DNA of 30,380 nt from Macrostomum lignano (taxonomy: Eukaryota), in NCBI GenBank assembly GCA_002269645.1, contig NIVC01000179.1, forward strand, positions 176,306 through 206,685, read 5' to 3'. Position 1 is the stretch's first letter; every line of letters starts with the position of its first letter. Both the position numbers and the translations under genes were made by a program. Positions 641-30,166 of this stretch are shown here, piece by piece. Below the pieces are notes generated by a model, which saw only the letters and a program-made list of their open reading frames with translations, had not been told where the DNA came from and did no database searches.

Positions 641-728
641 ACTGCTCGATATATTGGAGTTGGAAGCTATTCAGGCTCCACCATCTACTATACGATTTGT
701 GAGATTGAAGTCTATGGCTATCCGCTGG
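641..728 (+). CDS. C-terminal exon of an F-type lectin/discoidin-like domain
   Basis: cttcag|TARYIGVGSYSGSTIYYTICEIEVYGYPL|gtaagt. Same phase 0-1 boundaries and motif as exon 8311-8401 (AARYAG...EYEVYGYP). Confidence 0.75.
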
Positions 729-3700
729 GTAAGTCTGCCAATACGAGTTAAGTCTGTTTTGAGGGCTATGAGTTTGTTAGCTGCGATAGATTCCGCGCAA
801 GTTATTAAATGAGTTTGCCTTTTTCACGGGTTGCATTAATCTTCCTCTGTTTCCAAAGAGAGTTTTACAGTTCTCGTGTCGTATCTCATTCCAATTTTAA
901 TTCAAATCCTTATATTTATAACAAAAAGCTGCTTTTTCTTTTTACTTAGAAAAATCGTAAACCTAGGTATCAAAACTTTTATAGGCCACCCAGGTGATCA
1001 GCTGTCCGAGCTGTCGTTCGTCCGCACCGGCCTGGGCTCCCGGTATCCGGCCACCGTCGCCAGAGCTAACCGGGTGTACCCGTACAATGGGCTCACCGGT
1101 GATGTGTACTCTCTTCCACTCGAGTTCCCCGGTGACGAGGCCTTCAACTTTGCCCTATACCTGCACGGGCACGGGTACCTTGACTTGTACCTACCCTGCG
1201 TCTACACGGTCACTGGCTTGATTATTCAAGGCTCATCTGTGCACTATCCGTACTACGGTCGCTTCCTAACGTATAGAATACTCTACGCATACGAAAAGCG
1301 GCGAGACATGCTGACGTACTACAGGGACTTGGAGAACAATGGCGCTGTGAGCAAACTACCAGATATAGATGTTTTATTTGGAATTTTTGCTACTGAGCCA
1401 ATGCTTTCTGGCCAGTGTTAAACATTTAAAGTCGATTAATAATTGAGAATCATTCAAATAAACTATCCGGCTTGGTATTAGACTTAAACTCTTGTAAATG
1501 TCGGAGGATATTTTATCGTCAATATGTATTGTTATGGCAAGCTTAAAAATTACCTAATAATAACCCTATATTCAGGTGAGCTTTAGCGGGCCTCGAGATG
1601 AGAAGGAACGCCGTAGAGAAGTTTTCACCAACCCGTTCCAAGCTCAAATTGTGCGAGTGAATGCTCTGTCCTCTAGTGGCCGCTATGCAATAAAGCTTGA
1701 TTTACTTGGCTTTCCGAACGACACGAGTAAGTAAACTCTAATTTCCCCTAAAACATTGAATATTAGTATAAGAGCATACTAACAACTATAATCTACTACA
1801 GACAGCACCCAGATTCCGGAGGAGCATATGAACAAGACGATGGTGGATGGCTCAACGCTGCAGGTGACATTGAAGTACTTCTACCACCTGAACTTCATGC
1901 AGTTCAATAGAAAGTCAGCCGGTCTTCTCCGGTTCTATTTGAGCTTTGAGGAGCTGGCTGGAGAAGATGAGGTCTTCAAGGTGTACAACACAACGTGGAT
2001 GGTACGACTATCGTCTTTTAACTTTTTGATATCTTTTACATTGGCCCTAGTTATTTACCTGGATACTGTTAACTTGATTGCAGTTCAATGTCCAGTCTGC
2101 AAACCAAAGTCTGTACTTTCCACAAGTGCTGCAGCCGCTCAAGCTGACATTCCACATTGTCAATGGCAGCCTGTCTCCTGATGAGCTGAGTCTGCTCGGG
2201 AAGATGACCAACGACTGCCCGGATGGATTTACCCCGCATTTTGACGTTTGCTTGCGAACCATTACAGTGGTGGCAACTCAAGAAGTGGCGCAGAAACACT
2301 GCCAAAGCTATCGGTGGGCTGGGCAGAGGGGAACATTATTCATGCCGAAGGACGCCATGAAGATGAACTTCATTATAGGAAAATAGTGAGTTTTCAGTTT
2401 GCTAAACTTGTTTTGCTTAAAAAATTAACGTATTGTGGGGAATTTATGATAAAAAATGCATTGATACCTGGTAAATTCAGCTATGACTGGGAAGTGCATG
2501 TGGGCATCAGAAGAAACTCGAGCACCGGCAGCTGGGAATGGTTTGATGGAGAGCCAGTCAGCGATGGATCCTGGGCTGCCGAGAGGGCAGGGAATTTGTA
2601 TGCCGTGTGGCGTCCCTGGTTTAATGGATTGATTCCTAGCGGAAGCAGCACTGCCCGACTCTACTTTGTTTGCCAAATTCCTATTGTTATAAGTGAGTTT
2701 CAGCGCATTTTAAAGTTACTTTTTAATATTGCTTTCGACTACGTTCGCTGTTCACATTCTTGTTTTTAATCCTTTAGGACCGAATTCGTGTACTAAAGGG
2801 CCCATGGTTTACTACATGCATCCGTCAATGTGCTCAGGCTGCAATGACGATTTCGCTAAGTGGACCGATACTGACATCAATATTCGAGTAGCACACAATG
2901 ATGTCATGTTTATTGACGAATACTTCATGAACCGGACGACTAACTTTAGGGCTAATACGCAAGATTTTTGGATTTTTTCATCGAATCCTCTTTCTTCTCC
3001 TCCTCAAATAAATTCCAATAATGTTTTGCAGCACTTTCCTTGTGTTGAGTCTTGTAAGTGATTTTAATTGCAATCGAAATTTATGTCTGCCATTTCGCTT
3101 TGTACTGTTTAACTTATTCCTTTTATTATAGCTTGTCTGCAGCCTCTGCTTCCTGGGATTCCTGGAAAGTTAAGAGCAACTCTAAGCGGATCTGGTCGAT
3201 CGTCTTTTAATAAGCCAGAGGATGCGATTATGGGAAATCCTGTCCGCACACGAGGTAATCCTTCATGAATTATTTGTACCAGTGCTTTTGACAGCTTGCT
3301 TACGTTATACATGTAGTCTCAGCACTCAAAAACAGCAACAAATGCTAATCGCATTTATAGTTCCGTGTGTAAACAGCAGAGGAGATCATACCTACTTTCT
3401 GCACGAGCTGAATGTCACCAGAGAGGGTATCGCTTGCGCACCTTGGACGTCTGGAGTTCCGGACCGAATGAACTATAGCTCGTATTGCATAAGCAGTAAG
3501 TTAAATCGCATCTAATGCATAGGCTTGGCTGTAGCGCTTTCAGCAAACGGATATCCTCATTCACAAGAAGCTATGCATGCATTTCAGGTGCCACATCCGA
3601 GCAGCCTTCGTGCAACAAAGTCACGGGAGGGAAGGGAACCTGCCTTGCCACAAGCTGCTGTAAGCGTCACGAACTAGAACTCACTTTAAATTAATACAGA

Positions 3701-6700
3701 GGCTTTTAGGACTATTTGTTTGTTACAGAATAAAAGAACCAAAATTTAGGTGACGCTATTATTAAATGGGCGTTTAAGATTTTGTTCATAGGAGTTGCTG
3801 TGAGTTACTAGACGGTAAACGCGTCCGACTCAATCCCGCCACGACGCCTGGTTAGATTCGGGCCTGTGAGATTTTCCCGCAGAGTTTCCTGCAGAAGAAG
3901 CAGTGGGTTTCTCCTGCGGCGAAGTTTTCGCGCATGATGTTTTCCACCAAGATTCTCCTGACAGTTTTTCCTGCCAAGGTTTTTCTGTCGAGATTTGGCA
4001 ATCTGCACATCCGGGGTTTTAAAATCTAGGACCTACAAGCATTAGGGCTCAGGACCTAGAAACTATTAAAAAATCTGTAAGCATTACTGCTACAGCTTTT
4101 AGTAAAATTTTATACACGTGCACACGCTCCATGTATCCACATATATGTATTAACACATGTCATTTATTCATAAAATTCTCACATTCATATGTAGAATTGT
4201 ACAGTACGGAGTCTAAATCAACTGACGCGATGGTGATTTTCCCGCCTCCTCCCTGAGAAGCAAAGATGATAATTTTACCAAATTTTACCAGCAGCTTTAG
4301 CTTTTCTAGTACATATTTCCAAATACATTTCCTAACTGGTCCAAGATTTGCGCTGGGTATGGGATGATTTCACCGAAGGCGCTGCGCCAGGGTGCCCAAA
4401 ACCCACCAGCAAAATTTATTTTATTGTAAACTATATTGCTCTTATTGCGTAGTTCAAATCTTCGTCGATAGTGCTTTGGTTTTTCAAATTTAAAGAAATC
4501 TGGCAAATTATCAAAACTTAGGCTTCCTCCTTTTTACTAAACAATGTGATATCAGAATTTCAGTGAAATAGGCAGTCTTATATTATACAAATGTTTTATG
4601 GGGCGTTATCTTCAAACAAAAACCTGGAATTCTTGTTCCAGTTCACTACTACCACCCGAATATTGCGGGGCTGCAGGGCCACAATGCTGCTATCCACAAA
4701 AAAGTTTGGTTCAACAACAGAGAAGTGTCCGACACCGCCACATCTGGCGGTTTTCTCAACATTTACACCAACAATCAGGCATCGTATGTGGATGCTACTG
4801 AATACTATTATGTTCTGGTGGACCTGAAGTTGCTGCATACAATTTCGGGTGTCGACTTCCAGAGCCGTAAGAGGCATATTTCCAATTTTAGAAATATTCC
4901 GATTTTGCTCATCTGCAGTGCGAAGGCTTTTAAGTCTATGGATTTTTAATATGATAATTTCTTGAATGATGTTGCAGTTAAAAGTATTGTAATTTAAACT
5001 ACCTGTAGTTTGAAAATTGAGTCTATTGATAAACTTAAACTATGGTAGTTCATATATATGTTACTATATCTATATAATTAGCTCATATCTGACTACATCA
5101 TAATTTTCATGAATAATATATTGATGCAAGTGACCAGTGAAAGAATAATACTTGAAGTTTATTTTTTAAATTTTCAATGCCCAAGCAATTCGTTGGCCAA
5201 AACTAGTAGTGCATATACGAGCTATATAATTAATGCACTAACAACGATAACAAACAAAATACCCCCAGGATCTAGAGTAGCGATGACAATGTCGGCCGAT
5301 AGAATCCGGGCCGACGTTATTTACCTCAATATATTTAAGTAGATGCCATAAATTGTAAAACAAAAATAAGACATCAGTTTTCAGCTTTTTTCAGCATACA
5401 AAGCACATCTGCAGATCGCTGGTGAAACCTCATGCTTATATAATATGAATAATTACGGAATAGGTCACCGACTCGAGAGTTGCATACCAATAATTTGTAT
5501 AGACATGCTGAAATCAGTCTATATCCCTGCATCCGAGACAGCAGTCAGATGGCTAAAAAACGCACCCATTGCTTTTTAACTCCACCCGTTTCCTCACAGC
5601 AACCAGTGGCCAGTACCCGATCCACGTGCGCGTCAGCAGCAGCTATGACTCATCTCTGGGAGAGCGCGCCTTTATCAACTGGCCTCTGTGCGACTCGCTG
5701 GAGCTATCTGTCAGCAGTCTCACCGAGTACAGCTTCACCTGCTCCAGCGTCATGCTTGGTCGATATCTCGTTCTCACCAAGTCCGCTGATTTGGGATTCT
5801 TTCGGGTTGATCAAATCTTTGTGTTCGCAGAGGAGTGTAAGTTTTTGTCTTTTCATTGGTCCATTTTGTTTAAATTACGATTTTTTTTAGTAGTAACATG
5901 CCCAGCAATGTTAATCCCCAGACTATGACTACGACTCGCAAGTGGACATGCGAGTCACATGGATGCCGGATGAGACGATCTCGAAGGCTCTGCAGACTAA
6001 CAATGTCACATTCAATTTGCTCATTCGCAACAGACTGGCAAAGATCTGGTTCACCGATCAGTATGGCTACTTGGAGGCCATGACCAATGTAGGAAACCAG
6101 TTCTTAATGTCCAATTTTCATGCCAGTAAAGCACCCATTTCCTAAAACCAATCAATACTCATGCATTCCAGCCTCGCTACGTGCTGATGCTGCAAGGAGA
6201 CGGAGCGAGCCTGATCAAATATGTCGGAGGGCAAATCGAGAACAAAGACTACTCTGTAAACAGTCCGGCCGCATATGTGCTCGAAATGCTGAACAGCTCA
6301 CTCAACCGGACAGCAACTCATAATACACAGGACTTTGCCAAGGTCTGCGTTACCTGGACAGCCGACAACAATGCAACTACGTTTTTCACCTACGTAGATG
6401 GCCAGCTGATTGGTCAGTCAACGGACTTCCGTCACGCCATCCCGATCAGAAAAATAGGCTACTCAAACGACGTATACAGCACTGGCACAAGCATACAGAT
6501 GTACTTCGATGTGAGGAGCACAAAGACTATGTCAACATATCGGCCACAGTACTATTTCCACCAAGAACGAGTTTATCTTCAGGTAGCCTAACTTTTTTTT
6601 CTCATTTTATTTTCGGAATATGCGCACTCGAGCCCAACTGAATAAAAAAAATCCACTCGTATTTTTTCTAGGCAACGTTTGACAAGTTCGTCAGCCTGCA

Positions 6701-9700
6701 ATGGATCACACTGCAAGGGGGGCCGGGTATCAATGTTCTCTCTAACTCATGGACAACCGTGCTGAGCTACTATATGTACTATAGCGAGAATGCCCGCTAT
6801 TGGAGGTCACTCTACAACAAATTTGTAAGCAATCTCACAGATACATTATAAATGATAAATTTATGTTCACAGATAAATTATTTTAAGCAACTAAAATTAA
6901 ATTTTTTGTGTCGATAATTCCCTAAAATATATAAGAGCTACGATTTACAAGAAAACTAATTTCCCCATATTGCAGCTGTTCATTGGTCCACGTCAGACGC
7001 GTCAGGCGGCAAGTGTGAAGCTCCTGCCTGACCTGCGTACACTTGCTCTCAGAGTTTTCCCCTACCAATATCAAACACGGAACGAGTTGAAGTTGCAGCT
7101 GTATGGTTGTCCTTATGGTAAGTAAACCATTTAATCACATATAATTTCTGTTATGACAATTTTAGCTAATAAAAGTTCTGATTTTCAGATACAAAAGACG
7201 CCTCTCTGCCGTATATCGTGTCGAACTACAAGTATAGGTACTACAGCTCATTCAGCTATGCTGAGCGAGGCAACGATGGTAGAGCCTACATGTTCCAAGG
7301 GTATAATCAGCACTACATGACCTACTATCAGGACTACGCTGATCCGTATCACTACTGGTTGATCTCCTTTGGCCACCTCACAATTGTTAAACGGATTCGA
7401 GTTGTGGATTTGATCGAAGAGCTTGGTGAGCATAAAGCCTGTGCCTTATTTTGTACCTTTTTTACCCAATAAAGTAAGCTCACGCGTCACAAGCCCTCTG
7501 TAGTTTACAATATATGCCGGAATCCTGCTGTAACACCTATCCTTCTATTTATACCATTAATTACTTACCATCATTTTGAATATATGCTAAGGCTTAACTC
7601 AATTTAAACTCGTACATTACGATGTGAAGTCTACCTCCTGAGTTTTACGCCCGCACTATAAAAAAACTCGGGTTGAATTACGTCTCCAAACGTGAAAGCA
7701 ATGAGAGGTGCCGATCGAAAAGCATCGGACTAATTTCAGATGCGTACGGAGGGGACGTCTGTGGCCCTTCGTCTAGCCGCACGGGATACTTTGGACGACT
7801 GAATGTCACATCATCAGGTTATACTTGCCAGGATTGGGAGAGCAACACTCCACATGTTCCCAATACTGACTGCCAAAATGCTGGGTATTTTCCTGTGAAC
7901 AATAAAACTGCCTCCAAGAACTACTGTCGCAATTGTGACAACACAAACCGCTTCTGGTGTTATACCACCAATCCTAGTGTGAGATGGCAATCCTGCCAGA
8001 TTTATTCCTGCAGTCGAGCAAACATGCGATTCGGTGAGCTCAAACCACACAATTATATTAAATTCTATTTAAAAATACAGCTCTGAAGTTTTTTAATTTT
8101 CCAGACTATGAGGAGCTAGCTTTCGCGGAGCTTTTTGTATCAAACTCTTCCTCAGTCACGCACTCCAGCGTGCAGGTGCTTGAAAACCTGGGCGACAACT
8201 ACCTGAGAGAACACATTTGGGCTGTGGAAGCTAATAAGGTAAATTTTCTTGGTTTCCAGATTTTTATTGCTTGTGCTTCAAAAATTTAATTCTATCCATT
8301 GTTGTTTTAGGCAGCGCGCTATGCCGGAATACGAAAGCTGGCTGATTACAGACGGCGACTCAGCTTTGCAGAGTACGAGGTCTATGGATACCCTGCAATC
8401 AGTAAGCTCTCGTTTTTTTCTAACTCAAGTTAAAGTGAAATAATGCAATCGTACGAACTTTCAAATAAAATACTAAAACTACTCAAACCTTTCAGATCAG
8501 CTGCATTTGCTTGGCAATCCCATCGGAATGGAGGACGGCATTATTGAGTTGAACCAGCTGGACCCGCAAGCAACTCCGCTGCCGTCAAACGCGGATCCAA
8601 GTCAGTACCCGTCACCGTACATGTTTCGGCTCAACACCCCAAAGAAGCCTCGGCAGCCTCCTGGCATGTTCTACTACTCCGGTGAGTGGCAGAAGTGCTT
8701 CCTGTGTTGATAATTTCAGATATCGAATATGCTCATGAAACAGTGATGAAATCTTGACTATTGCATGGCTGAATCTCACAAGAGAAGCTGACAACTGTTT
8801 CAGAATACCCAATAAACATCTATCTGACTGTGAGTCACACCATCCTTGGATTCGTGATCCAAGGCTCATCAATGATGGACAGAACGAATTACTGGCGAGC
8901 CTATGTGAGGAGCTTCAAGATATTCTACGGCGATGACCCGAGAACTCTGGTTCCAGTGAGGTCTTATCAGACGAGCAACAGCTACGTTGATGTAAGATGC
9001 CTTTCTGATCGAAACCAATGCTTTCTTCTCCGCTCGCGACTAAGGCATAAAAATGCAGCGCTTTTTTACCATTGCAGCACCAGTTCAACCAGTACTACAA
9101 CGACATGATGCAGCTTCGAATGGATGTCCCAGTGCCATTCAAAGCAAAAATAATTCAGTTCCGTCCTGTGAGTTATTACAACAGGCGAGTGGCGAAACTG
9201 GAAATCCTGGGCTATCCGGATGGTGAGAAATTGCATGTATTACTCCCATTCAATCCCATTTGACTCAATAAGTCGAAGTGTGTTGATCCAATGGTTTCTG
9301 ATTAAAATTATGCAGCTTGTTTTTCTTCCCGCAGATTGTGGTCTAATTTCTGGTGACCAGGCAACGCTGTCGAGCCCAACGTCAAACACAAGGAACTTTA
9401 TATTCAAGGACTTTTACCATTTCTCAGGCTTCTCGTTGAACACAAGCGGTGACCCAGTGAAGTTCCTGTTGCAGTACAGGCACATGCGTACCTGGCAGCT
9501 TGTGAACTTTACGGTTCTCGGGGAAACAACGGTTCGTAATCTGTTGCATTATCAGCGTCTTTTCCAACTGGCTGCTCACAAATACTCGAATTCGATTAAA
9601 AGTATTTACTCTGATGGTGAGCTTGCAACTCACTCGCCCACTACAGGTATTTGCCTCATCAAACGGATGCGACCAAGCCCTGCCGCACCTGATCCGAACA

Positions 9701-21700: not shown

Positions 21701-24700
21701 GATTGGACAAAGTCTCTCAGCCGTGGAGACGCGTTGCGGAGACTATCAAGTATTGCCAGAACAACAAAGACATTTGTGGAACAATGGAGATGATTACAAC
21801 TACAGAACAAGTAACAACGATCTCTCGCATGAACTCTCTCAGCGTGGGATTTGAGACAACTTCTCTGTCTGGAAGTTTCGTGATTGAGCAAATCTGTCGA
21901 GGTAAGTTGATACTGGCTAGAAGACGAAATTTGAAGTTGTTTTTTACTGATAAGATTAAATATATTTTTGAGTGCATAAACTCGACTTGCAGAGTCTTGC
22001 TGGACAAACTTTTTCGACACGAATAGCACGATTCCGATGAGCTTCGCTACCGGCCACATTTGGGCCGGGTCTGCTGCAGGAATTCCTCTTGCCGTCGTGC
22101 CTGATGCGACGACTGGCTTCTGGAGTGGCGACTGGGTCACGGTGCGTTTCGGCCAGCATTCTCTTTTAAGTTAGATTTTTTTACATAGAGCGTGTTGTAG
22201 CTTTCATGGGAATATAAAGCTTTTTAATTCTATAATACCGGATTCTATATAATCCGGATTCTATATAATAAGGTAGAAAAGCATAGACTAGCTTAAAAAA
22301 ATTTCGTATTGTTTTGGAGTTACGCTCGTATTTGTTGATACAGACCGTTTAATATGGTCTGTATCAACAAAATTCAAAGCTTTTCAATTAAAAAAGCATG
22401 CGGGAGCATCAGGTCGGTTCCGATCTCTTAAATATTGCTAGAATCCGGACTCGCTTGCTCCATATCAACATGTGCCAAGCAGTTCAGTAATTCCCATTCG
22501 CACTTTGTAAACTTCCCATAGCCTAAATGTATATTATAGCATGTATAGTGTAGCAACCATGTACTCGTACATCTATTTGCATGGTGAGCAACTAGCATGC
22601 GTGAGAATTGCATTCTGTGCGCGCGTAGGCTTAGTAAGAGGTATTTAGGATAAGAGCAATGTACATGCGACCCCAAAGCTCTGAAGTCAATGGCCTGAAG
22701 CATCGCTTTCCTCCTCAAGCGGATTAAAAATCATTGGCAAAGAAACGAGAAATATAAACGGAAGTAAAACAGTGCTTTAAAGAAACTTTATTTAAATTTC
22801 AGATATCATTCAACCAGACATTCCTATTTACTGCTGTGGCAGCCAGCGGTTCTGGCATCGAAGGTTCCGGTGACCGAGACTACTCAGGCTTCGTTCTTGA
22901 GTATTCAGATCTCACTCAGGCTGGAGCTCCTATGGTGACTGGCTCCTTCTCGTCTAGTGGGTCAGCGGTAAGATTCAAGCTGGAGCAAAATGTACATTGA
23001 CTGAATACTTCTGGGTCGAATTTTAATGAAATTTCGCTGTTTCCATTATAGGCTACTCTAACCGTTCAAAACGGCTACTTGTCTTGTCCGTTTAATCACA
23101 TCATTCGAAAGCCATTCTACACCAACAAGCTGAAGGTTATAACGAGTCCGGCTGGAAATTCAAAGGCCATGAAGTTCGACGTCTTTGGATGTCCAGTGAA
23201 TGGTAAAGTCTAATTTAAAATACAGCATTTCAGATGCATTAAAGATCAGAATGTCACTCGGTACTTAGCTCGTATTTACGCACATTTACCGTCACAATCA
23301 ATCTACCCGTCACAATTTTAGTTGATTCGCTTAGCTGCATAAACAGATCCGAGATCCACGTGCCGCACTCCCTGTACGGAAACATGCCGGCTCAGTGCCA
23401 AGACAACTGGATTGTGATCTACAAGAACTTCAATGCGAGCTGGAGCATGAACCGCAGTTACGAAGATTATCGACGCGGATTTTTCGACATGGAGAGTCTG
23501 CTAAATTCCAGCAGCTTCTGGATCGGAAACGAAGCCATGCGCACCCTCTCCATCTTCAACAAGTACCGACTGCGGATCGACATGTGGGACAAGAATGGCA
23601 AGTTCCAGTATGTGGAGTGCGACCGATTCTGGGTGGATTCGGTGTACGAAGGATACAAGGCCCACTTTGAGAGCTGTTTCTCTGCGTTCTCGGATTCTGT
23701 GCGACTGTCAAGTCACGACATCGCCCAGTTCTCTACTTTTGACAACGGGCCGCAGAAAAGCTGCGCCATCTCTGGAGGCAGTGGTTGGTGGTACAAATCA
23801 TCGGGTTGCTATGACAACAAGATGACTGGAAGCGGATTGTCCACATCACCCGATAAGATCTCATGGTCGCCTTCATTCGAGGGCGGAAAAGTGCTGATGC
23901 GGATCATTCAACCCAGCTATACCTATCCAGGTAAGTTTCTGTGTTGCATTTAATCATATATTTGAACAACAGCAGGTAATTTGTCACTCCTATAATGTAC
24001 ACGCTACTCCTTTAAAATCTTGCAGCACGAAATTTGAGCGAGGACTGTACTAGCGACCTCAACTGTCAAATTGTCAATCGATCTGTGTGTCTTGCACCAG
24101 ATACGATGTACCGAACTCGATGTAACTGCACTGTCGGTTGGTACCTTAATCAAGGAATGTGCAAGCCAGGTAAGCATTCAATAGTTTAATAGTTCTTGGC
24201 GCGCTGTGATAAACATACTCGTACTAACTAAAGTTGTAACTCTGCAAAACTTTTCAGTTGTCGACCTTGAAGCCATCGTATCATCGATTGTGTCTGGCTT
24301 GAGCGGCTCTTTTGTGCGCTCATTTAGGAAGAATTTCACTCAAGCTCTGACACTAAAAGTTCGAAATGGAACAGCCAATATTACTGCGGTAACTCCACCA
24401 AGCATCAACTACAACTTCAGTGTTTTTCTGTGGTCGGAAATGACTTCTTTGTACCCAGATCCATTGGCCGACCACTTCAAAGCAACCTATATGCAGGTTC
24501 TCGATGGAGATCAGGCTTCCTACGGTGCCATTGGACTGAATCTCACCTTCCAGGTATTCGGAAGCGTTCTTCTCGCTACTGGAAGCAGATGCAAAGCCAG
24601 CTCATATTTATGTATAGCCGTTATCAACTCCGACGACTCTTACTACCGGGATCTCAACTACACAAACAATGGTGGATGTTCGTCCATCACATCAGTGCGA

Positions 24701-27700
24701 AACTGTCAACCAAACACTGACACTCGCGTGTCTGCATTCAGCATTGCATCATCGAGTCCAAAAGTACTGACAAGATCGATGCGCAACGAATTCAGCATTT
24801 CTGCAACAGTGCAGGCCATTTCGGGTTCGTACGACATCAGTGCAGTGCAGGACAGTGATGAAAACTTTGTATTTTCTGCTCATCTCGCGTCAGCCGATTG
24901 TTCCAACAATGTGGCGTGCTTTGATTCTAGTCTCGTTCTCACTTCCAAGCTGACAAGTAACCTCACCGAGGTGCAGCGTGCTCTCAGCATTGGACAATCG
25001 CTCAGCTTCAGTTTGTCAGGTGGCTTTGAGTTCAACTTGACTTTGTGTGAACTCGCCAAGTACATTTGTGTGTCCAGTACAAACGGAGAAAACTCAAGTT
25101 TTACGGAAACAGTGCCGAACAATAATCTGCTATGCCAGCCAATCAGTATGAACTGCACGCCCTTCATCGATACGGCTGTGAGCTCAGTCTATCTTTCGGC
25201 ACGAAATGGCTCTTGGTTGTCTCGCTATGACGCACTGGTCGACTGGAACTCGACCCTGATGCATGTGAATGGATTGCATGTGACCGAAGTAGTTGGGAGC
25301 CGTCGTAACTTTTTTCCCACCATATTTCTCGCTTCGGACGACATGGCGCTCCAAGTCGGCTCAATTTGGCAGAGCTGCGGTGTTGAGGAACTGCAGCAGA
25401 GACTCGATCCGAACAGCACAATCGAATTCACATGTCAGGCAATGTTCAATGTCTCACGAACAAACTGTGAGAACCTTACCAGCTACTGTGTCATCTTTAA
25501 CAACACAGTCGCCCCATCATTCATTGAGGAGAATCCGACTAACAATATGCTATGTCGAGGATTGTCAGGGGCTTTGAACTGTCCTGGTCTTGCAGTCTCA
25601 AATACTACTTGCGTTTTGTCAGATAACACCGTTCGTCTTGGAGAGAGTTTCATGGTCACAGCGCACTGGGATGTTGCATCGACAATCGATGTGAACATCA
25701 GCTATGACACTGGCGTAAGCTATCATTGGAACTGGGCACAACAGAGCTACATTGCCAGTTTCTACGATATGGGATTCGATACTTACTATGAGTACAGGAG
25801 CGATGTCGGTCGCTTCAATGTTACATGTCGTCTTTGGAACGAAGTCAGTGAAGTTGTCCTACGAAATTCTATCGACGTGGTACCTGAGCTAGTCGACTTC
25901 CTCGACATCAGTTACGACTACTATCCATATGCCGTTCCGATAAACGTCAGCTTTACATTTCGAATGACAAACGGTTCGAGATATTCGCACCTCATCATCA
26001 ACTGCAGCATAGAAACAGAAACCGATCGCATCACATATGTACAGCTCACAGTGCCTCGGGATGTACCTCAAGTAGTGACTCTGGCTTATGTGGTCGATGA
26101 GCCATTTGTGTGGACCAACGTGACCTGCTGGAACCAGTTTTACAACTTCAACCGCACCTTCTATGTGATAAAGCAGGAGAATATCACAGGTTTGAGGGTG
26201 TTTCTGAACAACACACTTTATCGCACTGTAGAAGATTCGATGGCAAACATTAGCCTGACAAGTGGAACCCACGTGTCCTACATGATTCTTGTTGGAGACG
26301 GAAGGAACATCACGGTGGCTGACAATTCCAGACTGTCGGCTGATGCATCTGATGTTTACATCTGGAACTACCCTAATCATGGGGTGTACGATGTCGAGGT
26401 GACGGCTTTCAATTTTCACACAAGACAAACTGTGTACGTGAGAAATATAACGGTGCAACACATTCTGCAGAGCTTATTGCTGACGGCTCCAGCAAGCGTT
26501 CAGGTTCCTGATGGACGATTTACAGTCGACGTCACCCACACACTGACCCCATTCCCAACCAACGTGTCGTGTGTCATTTCGTTCGTCAGCTCTCGTTTGG
26601 AGCTCAGCTGGGTGAACTCTACGAGCCAGACGCAACAACTTATGTGCCAGCGCTCAATGATTGGCTCGCCAGTGAGCATCCAGGTCTTCTGCTCGAATCT
26701 CGTATCGTCAGCTGTTGCCGTGTCTAACTTGTCGTGCGAAGAGCGCATTATCGGTCTAAGCTTGACCTCGAAACTGCTCGAGCATCGAATGACTAATGTT
26801 GAAGTATCAGCCAAGCTGCTCAATGGATCTAATGTGCGCTACAGCTTTGATTTCGGAGATACATCACCAATTGAAAACTATACAAACCCGATGCTGTTTG
26901 CTGTGGACAAAGACATGGCAGTGAAGCACAACTATACAAAGGTTGGAAACTATACAGTACATGTGACTGTCTGGAACACGCTAAACTCTCTAAATGCCTC
27001 GATCGGTCCAATTATCATTCTTGACCCAGTGACATGTCCTAAAATCGTGTACAACAGCAGTGTTTTGTACACTCCAGCAACAGTCGGCTTCTGGGTCACA
27101 CACCCCTGCTACCCTGTGACAAACATGCACTGCACAATTGACTTTACTGGCTTCGGTAGTCTCTATCGGTACATTGACTATCTAGATGGAAGCAGTAGCG
27201 AGTACAGTGAAGCCTCGTTTCCTCGATCAGCCATCGGCTTGCGCAACTTCACTGTGAACTGTTCGAATCTACTCGACTGGCGCCTCACAAGTACGCCAGT
27301 CGAAATCATTCTTGACGCAGTGATTATCGGTGCATTCTACAATAACGGCTCAGTTCTGAACTACAATGCCACCACATTCGTGCTGAACATCACTCGATTC
27401 GGTACCAATGGCTGCTTTGCAGTGAACTTTGGTGATCACTCACCAGGTCGTTGCTTTGGCATTCCGAATCTTTGTGAACCGTACGCACGCAGTCACTCGA
27501 TGAACTTTACCGAGATCTCATATCAAGATACCAACCTTGTCTTCACTCACTTATACCCTTGGTACGGAAGCTACTCAGCAAGCGTCTTCGCTTTCAACCA
27601 CGTCAGCAACGACACAGCCGAAAACATTGCAGTGGTGTTGGACTGGCTCTGCTTCGAGCCTGGGCTCAATTTTACATTCAATGCAACAATTCTTACACCT

Positions 27701-29864
27701 CGCGATCCCGACAAGAGACTGGTGGTGCGACGTTCTGTGGCTTTCAGCGTAGAAGCGGTTGCAGATCTGAACTGCACAAAAACGCAAAACACGTGGCGCT
27801 TCTGGCAAATATTGGACCATCCGAGTGGCTCTGTTGCACTGACAAATCTGCCAGACTCATTCACGGTGTCACTGGCTGAGCGAACGCTTTGGTATGGAGT
27901 CTACAACGTGTTGCTGAATCTCTCCATGGCTCAAGTGCAGCCACCTGTGTCCACTGCGCTGAATTTTTATCTTGAGGTTGTCAAGACCCCGCTCGAATGC
28001 ACCGGTATTGATGGGCCGTCGGAGATAGAGTACAATGAGAATTTCGTACTCATAGCTGATAACTTTGTTCGCGACTATGACGTTGAGCCCGGAAATCACA
28101 CCGGAATGACATTTACCTGGGTGTGTCTGCAGTTGACAGAAAACGCATCTCAGCCGTTTAACTTAACGACTGTCGTGTCACTTCCTACTGAGCAGGGTGT
28201 TGAGAACTATCGAGGTTGCTATGGAAACGGAGCAGGTATTATTCACAGAGGTAGCAAAGCAGAGGCCGGCCGTTTTAACGGAAATAGCTACGACTTTATG
28301 CCGAATCGCACGTACCTGTTCAGAATGATTGTGTACAAGGACACAAGGTGGCAGTACTGCGAGAAAGCGCTGAAAGTGAGGCCACAAAAGGCGCCAAAAA
28401 TAAAAATGGCGTAAGTTCTGTCTAAATACAACACCAGTCGAATTTAATATTCGAGACGGAATGAAACATTTCCTATAAATTTGCTCATTTCAGATGCATC
28501 CACAACTGTGATTCGAAGATCACCTCTCTGCGAGATTTGGAGTATCAAGTAGAATGCACGAACTCTCTTTGCGGCCACAAGTTCCAGCCGCTTCAGTTCC
28601 GTTGGAGAATGTATCGAGTGGGCTCTCCTGCAGATGATAATTTAGCTGAGTGCACAAGAGGAGGTACGAGCATCAGATAGATAGATAGATACGGCTGTAC
28701 TTTGTCATTTATGTTATTTACCAAGCTCGTTGTCCCCAACCTTCCCACTTCAGGTGTATTCACAAACAGCACTCTTGTTAGAAACAAGTTCACTCTGATA
28801 AATGGCAGCTTTTACTACATAAATGTAACGGCGTACAACGTCGGACAAGAAGGTCCAGTAAGCGATCAGTTGCAGTTCATTGTGAACAGTCCACCGTTGG
28901 GCGGAAACTGCAGCGTCAAACCACTGAAGGGAATCGCCATGGAGACAAAGTTTCAAATCAACTGTTCCGGTTGGAAAGAGTTCCACACAAACACCGGTAG
29001 CTTAAAATACGAGTACCGCATTCAGCAGAAGGGAAGTCGGAGAGCGAACCTTCTGTTCTATGGAGATCTGACGACTCCACCAGCTATTTTCTTTCCAGTC
29101 GGGTCGCCAACAGACAATTTTGCGGCTACCCTCATTGCTTACATTTATGATTCTCTCGGAGACCGAAAAGACTATGTTTTCGATGTTTTTGTAAGTATTT
29201 CCTGTGCATTTATTGATGACACAATCGGTGACTGAACTTGCCGATGTGAACAAGCTTCAAATATCTGTTTCAGGTGGAACCACCGCCCGTTCCTCCAGAG
29301 GTGCTTGTTAAGAACATATCAGATATTTTCAGTGGAAGTAGTCCGGAGCTCAACAAATACCTTGAGAATGGAGATCAGCAAGGGGCATCTACGACGCTGC
29401 TGTGCGTTGGCTCACTGATGAATGTTAAGAATGAGGAAGCAGAAGGAGCCAACTCGACTGTTGAGTCACGAGAGAACTTCCGAATAAAGATGACTCAGGT
29501 ACACCACCGTCATAGATAATATTTTGATTGATGGAAAAAAACAATGCCCCGAAAATTCTTTCAGCAACGAACGCAGTTTATTAACGTGATTGCGAACTTT
29601 ACGGTGAACGCGACTGACTCGCTAGAGCAAACAAACGAGCTTCTGAGAAACTCTGTACTTCGAGTGGATCAGGTCACCTTAGGAGCTCAGGTAAGTATTG
29701 GCAGAACGATACGAGCGTAATGCTGCCAGAATCATGAAAAATTAATAAGACCAGCGTATTTTTATCTCAGGAAATCGTCGTAGGCAAGTTCTCCAGCCTG
29801 ACGGAAAACTATCGAACTCTGAAGACCAATATGAGTAAAAGAAACAAGTACTACATGGGTGAAG
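641..29864 (+). CDS. PKD1-like: Giant polycystin-1/REJ family receptor, partial (51 exons, about 5,245 aa, 5' and 3' incomplete)
   Basis: Hand-built GT-AG exon chain with consistent phases and no stops: 641-728, 985-1346, 1576-1726, 1802-2001, 2084-2385, 2481-2692, 2778-3053, 3132-3254, 3361-3495, 3588-3659, 4642-4866, 5600-5836, 5922-6088, 6172-6582, 6672-6824, 6976-7117, 7189-7425, 7740-8033, 8105-8238, 8311-8401, 8496-8681, 8804-8991, 9078-9222, 9335-9531, 9647-9779, 9925-10135, 10240-10712, 10888-11112, 11191-11457, 11540-11662, 11739-12273, 12357-12478, 13231-13842, 14016-14242, 19538-20165, 20234-20448, 20536-20671, 20773-20965, 21328-21530, 21620-21901, 21993-22141, 22803-22967, 23052-23202, 23322-23930, 24026-24169, 24258-28410, 28494-28663, 28754-29190, 29274-29498, 29565-29690, 29771-29864. 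PKD repeats followed by REJ define the family. That all exons belong to one transcript is inferred from phase continuity. Confidence 0.82.
985..1726 (+). CDS. Discoidin (F5/8 type C) domain, 2 exons
   Basis: YLDLYLPCVYTVTGLIIQGS...YRILYAY...|VSFSGPRD...FTNPFQAQIVRV...IKLDLLGFP matches the F5/8C pattern (VTGvitQG ... F.G..D ... P..A..vR ... rlEllG). Confidence 0.85.
1802..2692 (+). CDS. Short discoidin-like module followed by C-type lectin domain 1
   Basis: Short module ends DELSLLG. The CTL begins at about 2213: CPDGF..HFDVCL..AQKHCQS..GTLFMPKD|..VHVGIRRNSSTGSWEWFDGEPVSDGSW..YFVCQ, with a phase-2 intron. Confidence 0.8.
3361..3659 (+). CDS. Divergent kringle domain 1 (2 exons)
   Basis: CVNSRGDHTYF..LNVTREGIACAPWTS..SYCIS|SATSEQPSCNKVTGGKGTCLATSC has six Cys in kringle spacing. 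Confidence 0.7.
3868..4000. repeat. Degenerate ~13-16-bp tandem array (RAGNTTTTCCTGC-like)
   Basis: About 9 loosely aligned units, e.g. gagattttcccgc, agagtttcctgc, aagattctcctgac, agtttttcctgcc. Confidence 0.5.
4642..5836 (+). CDS. F-type lectin-like (FTP/discoidin fold) domain, 2 exons
   Basis: YVLVDLKLLHTISGVDFQS|P..IHVRVSSS..WPLC..YSFTCSSVMLGRYLVL..FFRVDQIFVF matches the FTP pattern VDL..I..V / C..C..GRYV..EV.V. Confidence 0.7.
5922..7117 (+). CDS. LamG/pentraxin-like module followed by the C-terminal two-thirds of a discoidin domain
   Basis: KVCVTWTADNNATTFFTYVDGQLIG..RKIGY is LamG/pentraxin-like. From about 6525: YLQ|ATFDKFVSLQWITLQG..YYSENARYW..|LFIGP..LRVFPYQY..LKLQLYGCP is F5/8C. 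Confidence 0.65.
7189..8401 (+). CDS. F-type lectin-like domain interrupted by a complete kringle exon (7740-8033)
   Basis: N-half AERGNDG..YWLISFGHLTIVKRIRV (7189-7425). Kringle GYFGRLNVTSSGYTCQDW..KNYCRN..FWCYTTNPSVRWQSCQIYSC. C-half ELFVSNS..|AARYAG..FAEYEVYGYP (8105-8401). Confidence 0.75.
8496..9779 (+). CDS. Discoidin domain followed by short discoidin-like module
   Basis: NPIGMEDGIIELNQL..FRLN|..TILGFVIQGS..VRSFKIFYGDD..|..PFKAKIIQFRPVSYYN..KLEILGYP, then DCGLIS..FYHFSGF..|..TNEIRIVI..VLFRGC. Confidence 0.85.
9925..11112 (+). CDS. C-type lectin domain 2 and F-type lectin-like domain
   Basis: CPFGFFRHKDSCFW..AKEICES..HLASPKTVLEN|..WKWWDGSPVDWKFW..ECL..TWRNIKC..FICE, then SASAANDG..DWWRVDMRTVQYVSEVWIYLRSD|..MCGFSGRYVIL..SLAEVVVY. 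Confidence 0.88.
11191..11662 (+). CDS. Degenerate PAN/apple-like exon plus N-terminal segment of a discoidin domain
   Basis: LFDCFRELAPTCKSVF retains only the inner Cys pair of a PAN domain. Exon 11540-11662 (SCDLRLVNGVPGLL..) resembles the F5/8C N-terminal segment and has the same length (123 nt) and phases as exon 3132-3254. Confidence 0.5.
11739..12478 (+). CDS. LamG/concanavalin-A-like domain
   Basis: VGFWPL..ANDI..GDLGSNVSWASGP..GALYLLGNANSTLQVP..YTVCFY..WHYFCVAV..|..GFLFCLQVFSLSL. Confidence 0.8.
12709..13029. mobile_element. Candidate decayed MITE (about 320 bp)
   Basis: 12-bp inverted termini TCCAGTAGTGAA / TTCACTACTGGA and a subterminal GGGCCATGGCCCC near-palindrome; no clear TSD. 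Confidence 0.4.
13231..14242 (+). CDS. Unassigned (PAN-like?) segment, kringle 3 and middle part of a discoidin domain
   Basis: Kringle at about 13600-13836 (CMVD..FAGKYW..GGVCPKW..AENYCRMP..C..C..C). Exon 14016-14242: GSWRAGSADLDEWLQLSF..YVLEYSDDSLYWYRY. Confidence 0.72.
14411..14616. repeat. 17-bp minisatellite GGGGGATGCTTGCTA(T/A)C
   Basis: Six near-perfect units at 14446-14547 with partly alternating AAC/ATC ends, plus degenerate units on both sides. The array appears to continue as CTTG.. after the retrotransposon. Confidence 0.92.
14617..14832 (+). repeat. 5' LTR (216 bp)
   Basis: TGTTAGCACTG...AAAAAACGAACA; identical to 18638-18853 except at position 3. Confidence 0.97.
14833..18616 (+). 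pseudogene. gag-pol: Disrupted gag-pol polyprotein
   Basis: Motifs: CFCCGKEGHTKDQC and CLQCGKVGHLKAVC knuckles; protease LLDTGS; RT LDLSNAY..YQDDILV; RNase H TDASPSGLGAVL; integrase HEGH..CSSC, DAFSKW, SDNGPQF, NGLAERFV. Lesions: TAG at 17317-17319 (ARVQR*AITL, normally W), a frameshift near 17612-17617, and no in-frame ATG before 15712. Confidence 0.9.
14834..14842 (+). promoter_or_regulatory. Primer binding site TGGCGACGA, probably tRNA-Ser(GCU)
   Basis: Lies 1 nt after the 5' LTR and is complementary to a 3' end ...UCGUCGCCA, as recalled for metazoan tRNA-Ser(GCU). The host tRNA is not visible. Confidence 0.75.
18629..18637 (+). promoter_or_regulatory. Polypurine tract GGGAAGGAG
   Basis: Purine run immediately 5' of the 3' LTR. 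Confidence 0.85.
18638..18853 (+). repeat. 3' LTR (216 bp)
   Basis: TGATAGCACTG...AAAAAACGAACA; 215/216 identical to the 5' LTR. Confidence 0.97.
19148..19256. repeat. (AGATATT)n heptamer microsatellite
   Basis: About 14 partly degenerate AGATATT units. Confidence 0.88.
19538..21901 (+). CDS. Discoidin C-terminus, full discoidin, short discoidin-like module, C-type lectin 3, PAN-like exon
   Basis: TLFGP..LRIY..KLEVFGC; then RVFAVVTAGG..VSYELFYG..TFLGNQED..APVVAKYMVFKP..FRLGFLGFP; CPRNFYYYNGRCV..ARQYCA..|VHIGV..WKNWRYDEP..TC..NWKSSTSC..VCE; KYCQNNKDICGT. Confidence 0.82.
21993..23202 (+). CDS. Discoidin domain (3 exons)
   Basis: SCW..GFWSGDWVT|ISFNQTFLFTAVAASG..FVLEYSD..|..KPFYTNKLKVI..AMKFDVFGCP. 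Confidence 0.72.
22228..22269. repeat. 16-bp tandem CCGGATTCTATATAAT x2 plus a partial copy
   Basis: Exact copies at 22238-22253 and 22254-22269. Confidence 0.85.
22331..22371. repeat. Perfect inverted repeat, 16-bp arms, 9-nt loop
   Basis: TTTGTTGATACAGACC-GTTTAATAT-GGTCTGTATCAACAAA. Confidence 0.93.
23322..23930 (+). CDS. Fibrinogen C-terminal (FReD) domain exon
   Basis: WIVIYKNFNASWSMNRSYEDYRRGF..FWIGNEAMRTL..YRLRIDMWD..QFSTFDNG..SCA..SGWWY..GC are hallmark FReD motifs. Confidence 0.92.
24026..24169 (+). CDS. EB-module/EGF-like six-cysteine exon
   Basis: LSEDCTSDLNCQIVNRSVC..RCNCTVGWYLNQGMCKP, phase 1-1. Confidence 0.7.
24258..28410 (+). CDS. 4,153-nt exon: three ~150-aa repeats, several PKD domains, start of the REJ module
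   Basis: Part of ORF 24206-28414. PKD motif YSFDFGD..HNYTKVGNYTVHVTVWN (about 26840-26980), also VNFGD..HLYPWYGSYSASVFAFN. REJ from about 27650: CFEP..LNC..LWYGVYNV..DYDV..TFTWVC. A very large PKD/REJ exon is also a feature of PKD1. Confidence 0.92.
28494..29864 (+). CDS. REJ C-terminal part and helical region preceding the GAIN domain
   Basis: CIHNCDSKI..FRWRMY|..VNSPPLGGNCSVKPLKGIAMETKFQINCSGW..LKYEY..FPVG..YIYDSLG is a REJ signature, followed by SLEQTNELL helical segments. Confidence 0.88.
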
Positions 29865-29942
29865 GTAAGCAACTGACCAGATTTTTCTGTTTACTGTAAT
29901 TTCATCCCAATCCGCTCAAAAGTCCAACATTTACTACATACT

Positions 29943-30163
<221 letters not shown>

Positions 30164-30166
30164 TAG

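Follow-up and report, generated by a model that had tools for sequence, protein, structure and literature searches.

A predicted giant polycystin-1-like gene of Macrostomum lignano shares its mosaic ectodomain with annelid proteins

Introduction

Platynereis PKD1-1 and PKD2-1 are necessary for the hydrodynamic startle response (PMC6294549), and in planarians the sensing of vibration and flow depends on pkd1L-2, pkd2L-1, and pkd2-4 (PMC11448475). Complex N-terminal ectodomains have been held to be confined to chordate polycystin-1 (PC1), and planarian PKD1-like proteins have been described without them (PMC11448475). In contrast, the gene described here is predicted to encode a PKD1-like protein with a giant ectodomain. 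It lies on the forward (+) strand of a 30,380-nt stretch of Macrostomum lignano DNA (assembly GCA_002269645.1, contig NIVC01000179.1, positions 176,306 to 206,685), and this whole stretch is referred to below as the window. The window gene falls in one protein family with Platynereis PKD1-1 and planarian pkd1L-2, which work with PKD2-like partners in ciliated mechanosensory neurons and come from the same broad animal group as the closest relatives of the window gene.

Human PC1 (PKD1, 4303 aa) resembles the predicted protein in that PKD repeats are followed by REJ, in the very long exon at this place, and in having a C-type lectin domain (one in PC1) in the ectodomain; through the homology of the relatives, the likeness would extend to the 11-transmembrane/PLAT organisation (PMC11448475). 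The two differ in that PC1 has LRR, WSC, and LDL-A modules and 16 PKD repeats, and the predicted 5164 aa gave no LRR, WSC, or LDL-A hit, while PC1 is without the discoidin, kringle, fibrinogen C-terminal (fibrinogen-C), and B modules (the last a tandem module described below) that the window gene has. The channel-like part of the relatives is also nearer to PKD2-type sequences than to PC1. SpREJ1-10 of sea urchin and human PKD1L2 and PKD1L3 are members of the PKD1 family in which REJ is accompanied by EGF and by modules of lectin type (C-type lectin, SUEL) (PMC1934368). They carry one to few modules compared with about 30 here, and discoidin, kringle, and fibrinogen-C modules are not reported for the sea-urchin REJ proteins in PMC1934368.

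An initial annotation of the window proposed a lineage-specific receptor in which many glycan- or pattern-recognition modules are coupled to a polycystin channel complex. Our analysis instead places the gene in an existing, unstudied PKD1-like subfamily, in which its kringle and LamG-like modules would be local additions.

Results

A chain of 50 exons reads through the window

The window is eukaryotic genomic DNA with 39-50% G+C and without a long bacterial-type gene array. Stop-free segments of its + strand give recognisable extracellular modules on translation, and a 4.2-kb segment (24185-28411) is open throughout. Exons were chained by dynamic programming over all AG/GT pairs, with an intronic retrotransposon masked, and the chain score was the sum of codon log-odds, splice-site matrices, and an exon penalty. 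The 4.2-kb open exon served as the first training set for the codon log-odds, and the chain itself as that of the later iterations; the model includes one kringle-like exon obtained by enumerating phase 1-1 candidates. The resulting gene model has 50 phase-consistent exons from 641 to 29864 (+), with 15,493 coding bases, 5164 aa, and 0 in-frame stops, and it is unchanged across exon penalties of 4-8. The introns have a median length of 94 nt, and 29 of the 49 are in phase 1. The exons are as follows.

Exons 1-10 (+): 641-728; 994-1346; 1576-1726; 1802-2001; 2084-2385; 2481-2692; 2778-3053; 3361-3495; 3588-3659; 4642-4866
Exons 11-20 (+): 5600-5836; 5922-6088; 6172-6510; 6672-6824; 6976-7117; 7189-7425; 7740-8033; 8105-8238; 8311-8401; 8496-8681
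Exons 21-30 (+): 8804-8991; 9078-9222; 9335-9531; 9647-9779; 9925-10135; 10240-10712; 10888-11112; 11191-11457; 11540-11662; 11739-12273
Exons 31-40 (+): 12357-12478; 13285-13842; 14016-14242; 19538-20165; 20234-20448; 20536-20671; 20773-20965; 21313-21530; 21620-21901; 21993-22141
Exons 41-50 (+): 22803-22967; 23052-23202; 23322-23930; 24026-24169; 24258-28410; 28494-28663; 28754-29190; 29274-29498; 29565-29690; 29771-29864

With identical parameters, the minus strand yields a chain of 18 aa and three locally shuffled copies of the window yield chains of 10-50 aa, and the control scores are at most 1.1 compared with 700 on the + strand. The best coding-potential score on the minus strand is 9.5, compared with 10-230 for the + strand exons. 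These minus-strand and shuffled controls rule out a chance chain of open frames. Scans of the window for Rfam families, tRNAs, and minus-strand coding sequence found nothing.

The chain initially annotated as 51 exons and about 5,245 aa is thus real, with the same start (641), end (29864), and central exon (24258-28410), although our own count of 50 exons and 5164 aa is 1.5% smaller and the 81-aa difference was not located. The chain is cysteine-rich and holds 113 N-glycosylation sequons. No hydrophobic window resembling a signal peptide or transmembrane segment was found in the 5143-aa model scanned, and the 21 aa added to that model at 28348-28410 are lysine-rich. As had been stated, neither end of the gene is present: the first exon opens in the middle of a module, and a further conserved exon starting at 30167 runs off the window. 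A search of positions 1-640 for an upstream exon gave one weak candidate at about 210-308 (+; NAEHRR...EFYVHCMA), which could possibly complete the truncated first module, although its splice signals are weak and it has no outside match. The chain reads as the probable middle of one very large metazoan protein-coding gene, whose product would have an unbroken extracellular part of 5164 aa or more.

The gene belongs to a PKD1-like subfamily with annelid and flatworm members

The C-terminal part of the chain holds the modules on which the family and subfamily assignments are based.

23322-23929 (+): fibrinogen C-terminal domain (FReD), aa 3179-3381; Fibrinogen_C 82.8 bits, E=4e-23
24026-24169 (+): EGF-like six-cysteine module, aa 3382-3429; read from its cysteine pattern, at the same position in the Dimorphilus and Macrostomum relatives, with no Pfam EGF or EB hit
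24213-25489 (+): three tandem B modules of ~135 aa each, aa 3415-3548, 3565-3700, and 3717-3840; mutual E ~3e-6, with conserved cysteines
25490-27763 (+): weakly repetitive region of ~760 aa, colinear with the PKD-repeat regions of the relatives, with one PKD domain (PF00801, 55.2 bits) at 26792-27001
27764-29864 (+): REJ, in the end of the big exon and five further exons; PF02010 62.7 bits (27764-28405, profile positions 4-207) and 93.6 bits (28765-29169, profile positions 271-404)

Word-indexed searches for homologues gave no hit with either the 1409-aa exon or the fibrinogen-C exon as query. When the last 1200 aa were used in an exhaustive HMMER search, 543 related proteins were returned at E<=1e-3, and 157 relatives were inspected for domain content. 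The closest database protein (P0001, MEE4247216.1; 65% identical over 843 aa) is a PKD protein on a 4.9-kb contig filed under a 'Kangiellaceae MAG' (metagenome-assembled genome), almost certainly a eukaryotic contig misbinned in a bacterial genome. The best named relatives are proteins of Macrostomum lignano, followed by two giant proteins of the annelid Dimorphilus gyrociliatus; amphioxus polycystin-1-like and scallop polycystin-1-like protein 2 are farther.

The Macrostomum proteins with PKD and REJ include UniRef A0A1I8JK18 (3185 aa), A0A1I8JIH8, and PAA69298.1 (2685 aa). Their identity to the window product is 26-31% across stretches of 1300-2100 aa, and one fragment is 47% identical within a part of REJ. 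In BLASTP, aa 3129-5136 align to residues 142-2209 of the Macrostomum protein P0153 (E=3e-179), and aa 3845-5134 align to the Macrostomum protein P0002 (E=2e-155). These proteins share the core of fibrinogen-C, three B modules, PKD, and REJ, which is followed by PLAT, Polycystin_dom, and PKD_channel. They differ from the window gene in having at most ~210 aa upstream of fibrinogen-C and no discoidin/C-type lectin mosaic in their models, which are perhaps truncated.

The Dimorphilus proteins are the predicted DgyrCDS14777 (CAD5126713.1, 5543 aa) and DgyrCDS14438 (CAD5126282.1, 6071 aa), giants like the window gene. By Pfam they contain many F5/8-type-C domains, three Lectin_C, PAN_1, F5_F8_type_C_2, Fibrinogen_C, PKD, REJ, PLAT, and Polycystin_dom, with PKD_channel detected in the 6071-aa protein only. 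They share with the window the order of discoidin, fibrinogen-C, EGF-like module, three B modules, PKD repeats, and REJ, and their colinear alignments to the window product (P0005 and P0006) have E about 1e-92 to 1e-95. Profiles derived from the window match discoidin, C-type lectin-like, fibrinogen-C, and B modules in the Dimorphilus proteins in the same order. Farther upstream, the distal block aa 2784-3327, from the third C-type lectin-like domain to fibrinogen-C, aligns to residues 1980-2508 of P0006 (E=2e-15), so that the order C-type lectin-like domain, module at the PAN position, discoidin-like module, and fibrinogen-C is colinear with that protein; aa 1262-1668 align to residues 1542-1951 of P0005 (E=4e-13). 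There are also differences: identity to the window is only 20-28%, an extra F-type-lectin-like domain stands between fibrinogen-C and the EGF-like module in the Dimorphilus proteins and not in the window, no LamG-like module or kringle was detected in them whereas the window has a kringle, and the Dimorphilus models are complete to the PLAT/Polycystin domain whereas the window stops short of that part.

The features of the PKD1-like family found in the chain itself are REJ in the ectodomain and PKD on its N-terminal side, with only one repeat passing the cut-off. PLAT and Polycystin_dom are present in P0002, P0005, P0006, and P0153; PKD_channel is above the cut-off in P0002 and P0005, and P0153 is just under it (21.5 compared with 22.4 bits). 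P0002 also matches solved chains of PC1 (E=3e-31, at its residues 1678-1955) and of PKD2L1/PC2 (E=3e-39). GPS/GAIN, 11 transmembrane helices, PLAT, and the channel are thus predicted through the colinear relatives. By these comparisons, the gene is assigned to the polycystin-1 family, and the initial annotation as polycystin-1-like holds. Given the lack of any hit to LRR, WSC, or LDL-A in the 5164 aa at E<=0.05, and a single PKD repeat above the cut-off compared with about 16, it is not placed as a PC1 orthologue, although LRR or WSC may lie further upstream, since the extreme N-terminus is outside the window.

Within the family, fibrinogen-C, the EGF-like module, and three B modules followed by PKD and REJ run through a single colinear alignment to P0153, and the giant annelid type is represented by a distal mosaic with five discoidin and three C-type lectin-like modules. 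Sequence comparison thus defines a subfamily, present in Macrostomum lignano and Dimorphilus gyrociliatus, whose membrane-proximal core is fibrinogen-C, EGF-like, three B modules, PKD repeats, and REJ, and the long distal mosaic of discoidin, C-type lectin-like, F-type-lectin-like, and further adhesion-type modules appears to be common to its annelid members and the window gene. To these the window copy adds at least one predicted kringle (7740-8033, above the cut-off) and probably LamG-like modules; kringle and LamG-like modules are the only ones absent from all 157 relatives inspected. The claim of a lineage-specific receptor does not survive, given the near-identical designs of CAD5126713.1 and CAD5126282.1, and neither does the claim that no polycystin combines such modules: discoidin, Lectin_C, PAN, F-type-lectin-like, and Fibrinogen_C modules already occur with PKD, REJ, and PLAT in Dimorphilus, leaving kringle and LamG-like as extra. 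Equivalent proteins are already public as uncharacterised predictions, which in substance amounts to the refutation that the initial annotation had named (a described family with the same architecture), although full-text literature searches yielded no publication on a polycystin of this composition.

A related contig supports the 3' exons and their constraint

A 145-aa REJ query retrieved one protein, P0027 (86% identical), from a 2753-nt contig of Logan run SRR24204725 (L001). This contig aligns to the window at 27902-29868 and 30159-30380. The predicted exons are 77-79% identical to it with no indel, whereas the introns are 46-59% identical with indels. Over 520 codons, the differences at codon positions 1, 2, and 3 number 66, 37, and 247, and the codon changes comprise 215 synonymous and 77 nonsynonymous ones. 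L001 corroborates six 3' exon boundaries, including those of 24258-28410. Because conservation reaches 28410 and the donor GGC/GTAAGT is common to both sequences, the big exon ends at 28410, as initially annotated; the alternative donors at 28375 and 28347 are ruled out by this alignment. L001 reaches 225 aa further 3', and that part has no Pfam hit. A metagenome scan for a related contig across fibrinogen-C, EGF-like, and B1 found none.

The distal ectodomain is a mosaic of lectin-like and other modules

The ectodomain is a chain of about 35 modules ending in PKD and REJ. Those upstream of fibrinogen-C are listed here (D, discoidin; CTL, C-type lectin-like; F, F-type-lectin-like; LG, LamG-like; KR, kringle; sD, short discoidin; U, unclassified).

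641-727 (+): truncated F-type-lectin/discoidin-like module, its C-terminal strand; precedes D1
728-1725 (+): discoidin (F5/8 type C) D1, aa 30-197; profile A1 E=6e-22, Dimorphilus profile 27.4 bits, PF00754 15 bits (below cut-off)
1726-2206 (+): U1, aa 198-305, unclassified and beta-rich; akin only to U3 and sD3 of the same protein (E ~3e-4), no Pfam hit
2207-2691 (+): CTL1, aa 306-435; Lectin_C 19.5 bits (below cut-off), similarity to CTL2 and CTL3 at E 7e-8 to 7e-6
2692-3052 (+): cysteine-containing module initially read as PAN-like, aa 436-527; no Pfam hit and no hit of the Dimorphilus PAN profile
3361-3659 (+): short kringle-like module, aa 528-596, exons 3361-3495 and 3588-3659; similar to KR1 (E=6e-5), no Pfam Kringle hit
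4642-5836 (+): F-type-lectin-like F1, aa 597-750, with a 733-nt intron inside; motif-level resemblance (alignment A2), no Pfam hit
5922-6510 (+): LamG/pentraxin-like LG1, aa 751-919; a sequence reading, no Pfam hit at E<=0.05
6672-7116 (+): short discoidin sD1, aa 920-1017; Dimorphilus profile 15.2 bits (independent E 4.5e-5), similar to D3 (E=1e-5)
7189-8401 (+): two F-type-lectin-like halves, aa 1018-1096 and 1195-1269; the first aligns to the N-terminal and the second to the C-terminal half of canonical F-type lectin domains from Dimorphilus
7740-8033 (+): kringle KR1, aa 1097-1194, a phase 1-1 exon between the lectin-like halves; Pfam Kringle 55.1 bits
8496-9221 (+): discoidin D2, aa 1270-1442; profile A1 and Dimorphilus profile, PF00754 15.3 bits (below cut-off)
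9335-9778 (+): U3, aa 1443-1552, of the U1 family by internal similarity
9925-10471 (+): CTL2, aa 1553-1700; Lectin_C 26.1 bits, above the cut-off of 22.6
10472-11111 (+): F-type-lectin-like F2, aa 1701-1855; PF22633 24.6 bits, PF00754 19 bits, Dimorphilus F-type-lectin profile 7.2 bits, all weak
11191-11661 (+): U4, aa 1856-1985, unclassified; no significant Pfam or internal match
11739-12477 (+): LamG/ConA-like LG2, aa 1986-2204; Laminin_G_3 16.9 bits, E=0.007 (below cut-off), no PDB sequence match
13285-13841 (+): cysteine-rich exon initially read as PAN-like plus a third kringle, aa 2205-2390; not confirmed, with an NYCR-type motif only
14016-19699 (+): discoidin D3, aa 2391-2520, split by the 5295-nt intron holding the retrotransposon; PF00754 18.4 bits, Dimorphilus profile 21.5 bits
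19700-20164 (+): discoidin D4, aa 2521-2675; PF00754 22.1 bits, profile A1 and Dimorphilus profile
20234-20670 (+): sD3, aa 2676-2792, of U type; similar to U3 (E=4e-4)
20773-21529 (+): CTL3, aa 2793-2929, with a 347-nt intron inside; Lectin_C 17.9 bits
21620-22141 (+): PAN2-like module, aa 2930-3073; not confirmed in the window, Pfam PAN_1 at the colinear position of Dimorphilus P0006
22803-23201 (+): short discoidin-like sD4, aa 3074-3178; weak internal similarity, P0006 has a discoidin there, just ahead of fibrinogen-C

Above the curated Pfam cut-offs (Kringle 34.3, Lectin_C 22.6, PF22633 27.8, and REJ (PF02010) 25 bits), the chain contains one Kringle (55.1 bits), one Lectin_C (26.1), one Fibrinogen_C (82.8), one PKD (55.2), and REJ (62.7 and 93.6). 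Modules below the cut-offs were tested as families through grouped profiles. Five discoidin modules are confirmed in this way, compared with about six plus three short ones in the initial census: profile A1, built from these five window modules, has PDB matches among factor V/VIII C domains, to neuropilin b1/b2, and to lactadherin (E=6e-22), and an independent profile of Dimorphilus discoidin domains matches the same five modules with 14-27 bits. All three C-type lectin-like domains are recovered, one of them above the Pfam cut-off; CTL2 matches the other two with E 3e-7 to 9e-10, CTL1 matches CTL3 with ~7e-6, and their joint profile matches C-type lectin-like domains (CTLDs) in the PDB with E=7e-6. 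The single fibrinogen-C stands as annotated.

The other entries of that census fared less well. For the four F-type-lectin-like modules the signals are weak, with PF22633 at 24.6 bits (below its cut-off) and, for profile A2, eel fucolectin 1K12 as best PDB match at E=0.022. One of three kringles passes, a second is recognised by its similarity to the first, and the third gave no Pfam hit and no kringle among PDB hits at E<=10 in a single-sequence search. Of the two LamG-like modules, one matches Laminin_G_3 below the cut-off and the other has no match. The proposed EB module exists as a six-cysteine EGF-like module that matches neither EGF nor EB in Pfam, and the PAN-like modules, of which at least two had been counted, match neither Pfam nor the profile of Dimorphilus PAN domains. 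The census is therefore right in kind and roughly in number, with about one third of it a motif reading.

The U family comprises three unclassified copies (mutual E ~3e-4), and U1 may have a discoidin-like fold in reduced form. Discoidin, U, and C-type lectin-like modules follow one another in a super-repeat with three copies, at aa 30-435, 1270-1700, and 2521-2929, which suggests an old internal segmental duplication. Recurrent blocks of discoidin ... C-type lectin ... PAN, resembling this super-repeat, are also seen in the Dimorphilus relatives. The kringle exon 7740-8033 could be a nested domain or a cassette exon within an F-type-lectin-like domain; an AlphaFold2 model of the kringle-in-lectin segment has a predicted local distance difference test score (pLDDT) of 37 and is uninterpretable.

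The three B modules have no significant match in Pfam or the PDB

The first 410 aa of the big exon consist of three copies of an unclassified module that is neither PKD nor REJ. An iterated B profile finds 3 copies in the window, in the full-length Macrostomum and Dimorphilus relatives P0003, P0152, P0153, P0005, and P0006, and in P0011 and P0020, and one copy each in the truncated relatives P0004 and P0029. The copies follow the EGF-like module and precede the PKD repeats. Sequence searches of Pfam and the PDB gave no match to the B module. With 17 aligned sequences as input, AlphaFold2 predicts a confident model (pLDDT 89) that is largely beta and has short helices, and a Foldseek comparison of this model with the PDB has no significant neighbour (best E=0.024, template-modelling score 0.39). 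The B module is therefore left unclassified.

The lectin exons and the PKD/REJ exon lie in one predicted protein

Only short introns (95 and 88 nt), with good splice sites, separate the EGF-like exon from the fibrinogen-C exon before it and the big exon after it, and in the Dimorphilus and Macrostomum models these modules stand within a single protein and in matching order. The joining of lectin exons to the PKD/REJ exon in the initial annotation is thereby supported. Long introns also occur inside single domains, in D3 (the retrotransposon intron), CTL3, and F1, and in D3 the Pfam match (PF00754) crosses the exon junction at aa 2466/2467. Only three introns between modules are long enough to hold a gene boundary: 3660-4641 (982 nt), 12479-13284 (806 nt), and 22142-22802 (661 nt).

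These three introns hold AATAAA-like hexamers, and the chain could conceivably join two or more neighbouring genes, one or more upstream genes for secreted multi-lectin proteins and a PKD1-like gene starting near the fibrinogen-C exon. With most modules being phase 1-1 units, tandem genes could by accident supply exons that chain in frame; the Macrostomum relatives start near fibrinogen-C (P0153 has 212 aa upstream), and merged gene models are a documented artefact that produces spurious architectures (PMC3927609). However, the chain contains no hydrophobic stretch resembling a signal peptide, nor do the long introns contain a convincing ATG-plus-leader exon by eye. The discoidin-U-C-type lectin super-repeat spans every candidate boundary, the distal exons receive good scores when codon usage is taken from the PKD/REJ exon, and two independent Dimorphilus models, colinear with the window in the distal blocks given above (E=2e-15 and 4e-13), hold the mosaic and the PKD/REJ/transmembrane part together. 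We therefore consider a fusion of separate genes very unlikely and read the chain as a single gene.

The next exon is frame-disrupted in the window

Comparison with L001 extends the gene by one exon beyond the initially annotated span.

30167-30380 (+): next exon of the same gene, leaving the window; acceptor TTTAG/A conserved at 30166/30167, 81-82% identity to L001 (2077-2291)

Relative to L001, this exon has two 1-nt indels, one G missing after 30180 and one extra T at 30318, and its splice-defined frame meets a stop at 30290-30292. Both indels fall in short homopolymers (GG to G, TT to TTT). Thirty of the 37 substitutions are at third positions of the L001 frame, and this pattern is found in all three segments. 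The two indels are either assembly consensus errors or a very recent null allele. An old pseudogene is disfavoured because 15.5 kb of clean coding sequence lies upstream and constraint is strong. A (TACT)49 microsatellite occupies 29969-30163, in the intron after exon 29771-29864, and is missing from L001.

A recently inactivated copy, a null allele or young pseudogene whose chain is still open because the inactivation is recent, would account for the -1 indel, the +1 indel, and the stop. The density of indels, 2 in 214 nt against 0 over the 1498 nt of exon that were aligned, would be unusual if assembly errors fell at random, and a very young LTR (long terminal repeat) retrotransposon in the same orientation, with identical LTRs and an intact target-site duplication, sits in an intron of the gene. 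On the other hand, short-homopolymer indels are the typical mark of long-read consensus errors, functional genes commonly carry intronic retrotransposons, and there are 0 stops or frameshifts across the 15.5 kb upstream. Purifying selection relative to L001 is strong even in the disrupted exon, where the ancestral frame is still visible in the third-position changes. Inactivation is accordingly judged unlikely, if somewhat less so than gene fusion.

A Ty3/gypsy-type retrotransposon lies in the intron within D3

The retrotransposon masked from the chain lies in the longest intron and is no part of the protein.

14617-18853 (+): Ty3/gypsy-type LTR retrotransposon, 4.2 kb, intronic, in the orientation of the gene; recognised by LTRs, target-site duplication, and Pfam domains

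Its LTRs are 216-217 nt long and 100% identical, with TG..CA ends, and it is flanked by a 5-bp target-site duplication (GTATG). A primer-binding-site-like sequence, TGGCGACGACGG, is present, as are a gag-like domain and Pfam matches to DUF7041, aspartyl protease, RVT_1, RNase H, and integrase. The pol frame has two breaks, one a stop at 17317-17319 and the other a change of frame ahead of integrase. By these sequence features the insertion appears recent. Its open reading frames were considered as part of the gene and rejected. Two tandem repeats lie in the same intron, one just upstream of the element at 14412-14613 (17-nt unit GGGGGATGCTTGCTATC, 10 copies) and one downstream at 19135-19255 (a 7-nt TAGATAT array).

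The C-type lectin-like domains show no canonical sugar-binding motifs

In the alignment of CTL1, CTL2, and CTL3, the EPN/QPD and WND motifs of the canonical CTLD sugar sites are not seen at the expected positions. The loop ahead of the WND-equivalent position reads SSPGKEC, ERAGNLY, and DEPAAADTC, and the WND-equivalent position reads WRN, WRP, and ENW; the positions themselves were placed from knowledge of the CTLD fold, and are those we take to be equivalent. The best PDB relatives of the three domains are non-lectin CTLDs, namely type II antifreeze protein and lithostathine. Carbohydrate binding of the C-type lectin kind is thus not indicated by these domains, and the glycan- or pattern-recognition role proposed initially is not borne out. 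No feature of the window points to immunity, gametes, or settlement.

Discussion

The presence of REJ and PKD, the colinear relatives, and the shared core and mosaic are best explained by a giant PKD1-like receptor. By comparison with the full-length relatives, the missing 3' part would encode the GPS/GAIN cleavage region and eleven transmembrane helices, with PLAT after the first. The channel-like last six helices may assemble with a PKD2-type (TRPP) subunit, and the giant ectodomain would serve as a long adhesive tether or a ligand-capturing arm that binds extracellular matrix, glycocalyx, or particulate ligands. Force or binding could then be relayed via the REJ/GAIN region to the TRPP channel complex. 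The site of action would most likely be the cilia of sensory cells, by analogy with the PKD1-like/PKD2-like pairs in annelid and planarian mechanosensory neurons. The topology is thus predicted from homologous sequences, and ligand, cell type, and physiological role are suggested by analogy. Taken jointly for identity, subfamily, topology, and mechanism, we regard this account as probable.

With the same identity, the protein could alternatively act in ligand recognition, be it gamete recognition as for sea-urchin REJ proteins, immune pattern recognition, or the sensing of settlement cues. The C-type lectin domains of sea-urchin REJ proteins are described as likely to matter for the recognition of gametes (PMC1934368). 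More generally, fibrinogen-related, C-type lectin-like, F-type-lectin-like, and discoidin folds commonly serve recognition in invertebrates. The CTL domains of the window gene, however, do not show the canonical motifs and are nearest to non-lectin CTLDs, its F-type-lectin-like modules are too divergent to score, and the only functional data on spiralian PKD1-like genes indicate mechanosensory neurons. We therefore consider such a role rather doubtful, and keep to a tether or ligand-capturing arm on a sensory channel complex as the preferred explanation.

Several points weigh against this explanation. The joining of exons is predicted from splice signals, phase, domain continuity, and homology to gene models that are themselves predictions, a setting in which merged models are a known source of spurious architectures (PMC3927609), and the exon from 30167 is frame-disrupted in the window sequence. 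Most distal modules score below the Pfam cut-offs, and the PAN-like, third kringle, U, U4, and LG1 modules are without outside support. 'Lectin' is used here as the name of a fold and not of an activity. The GPS, transmembrane helices, PLAT, and channel parts lie beyond the window. Finally, the studied spiralian PKD1-like genes are tied to the window subfamily only as members of one family, and the planarian sensory PKD1-like genes probably differ from it in architecture.

Tentatively, and with less than even confidence, the window may sample an undescribed, apparently spiralian clade of giant PKD1-like receptors, marked by three B modules, by the recruitment of kringle and LamG-like modules, and possibly by a nested kringle. 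If this is true, these ectodomains, with >5000 aa and at least 30 modules, would exceed all others of the family in size. The gene itself is a case of an established receptor scaffold with shuffled domains, and the kind of system is not new. Sensing by very large polycystin-1-type ectodomains, that of human PKD1 included, is still poorly understood, and the gene and its annelid and flatworm relatives suggest that some invertebrate PKD1-like ectodomains are even larger and quite different from that of PC1. They may be of use for comparative work on polycystin activation and for the annotation of these genomes. If it is true that these proteins tether ciliary TRPP mechano- or chemosensors, they would offer a natural system for the gating of a polycystin channel by its ectodomain.

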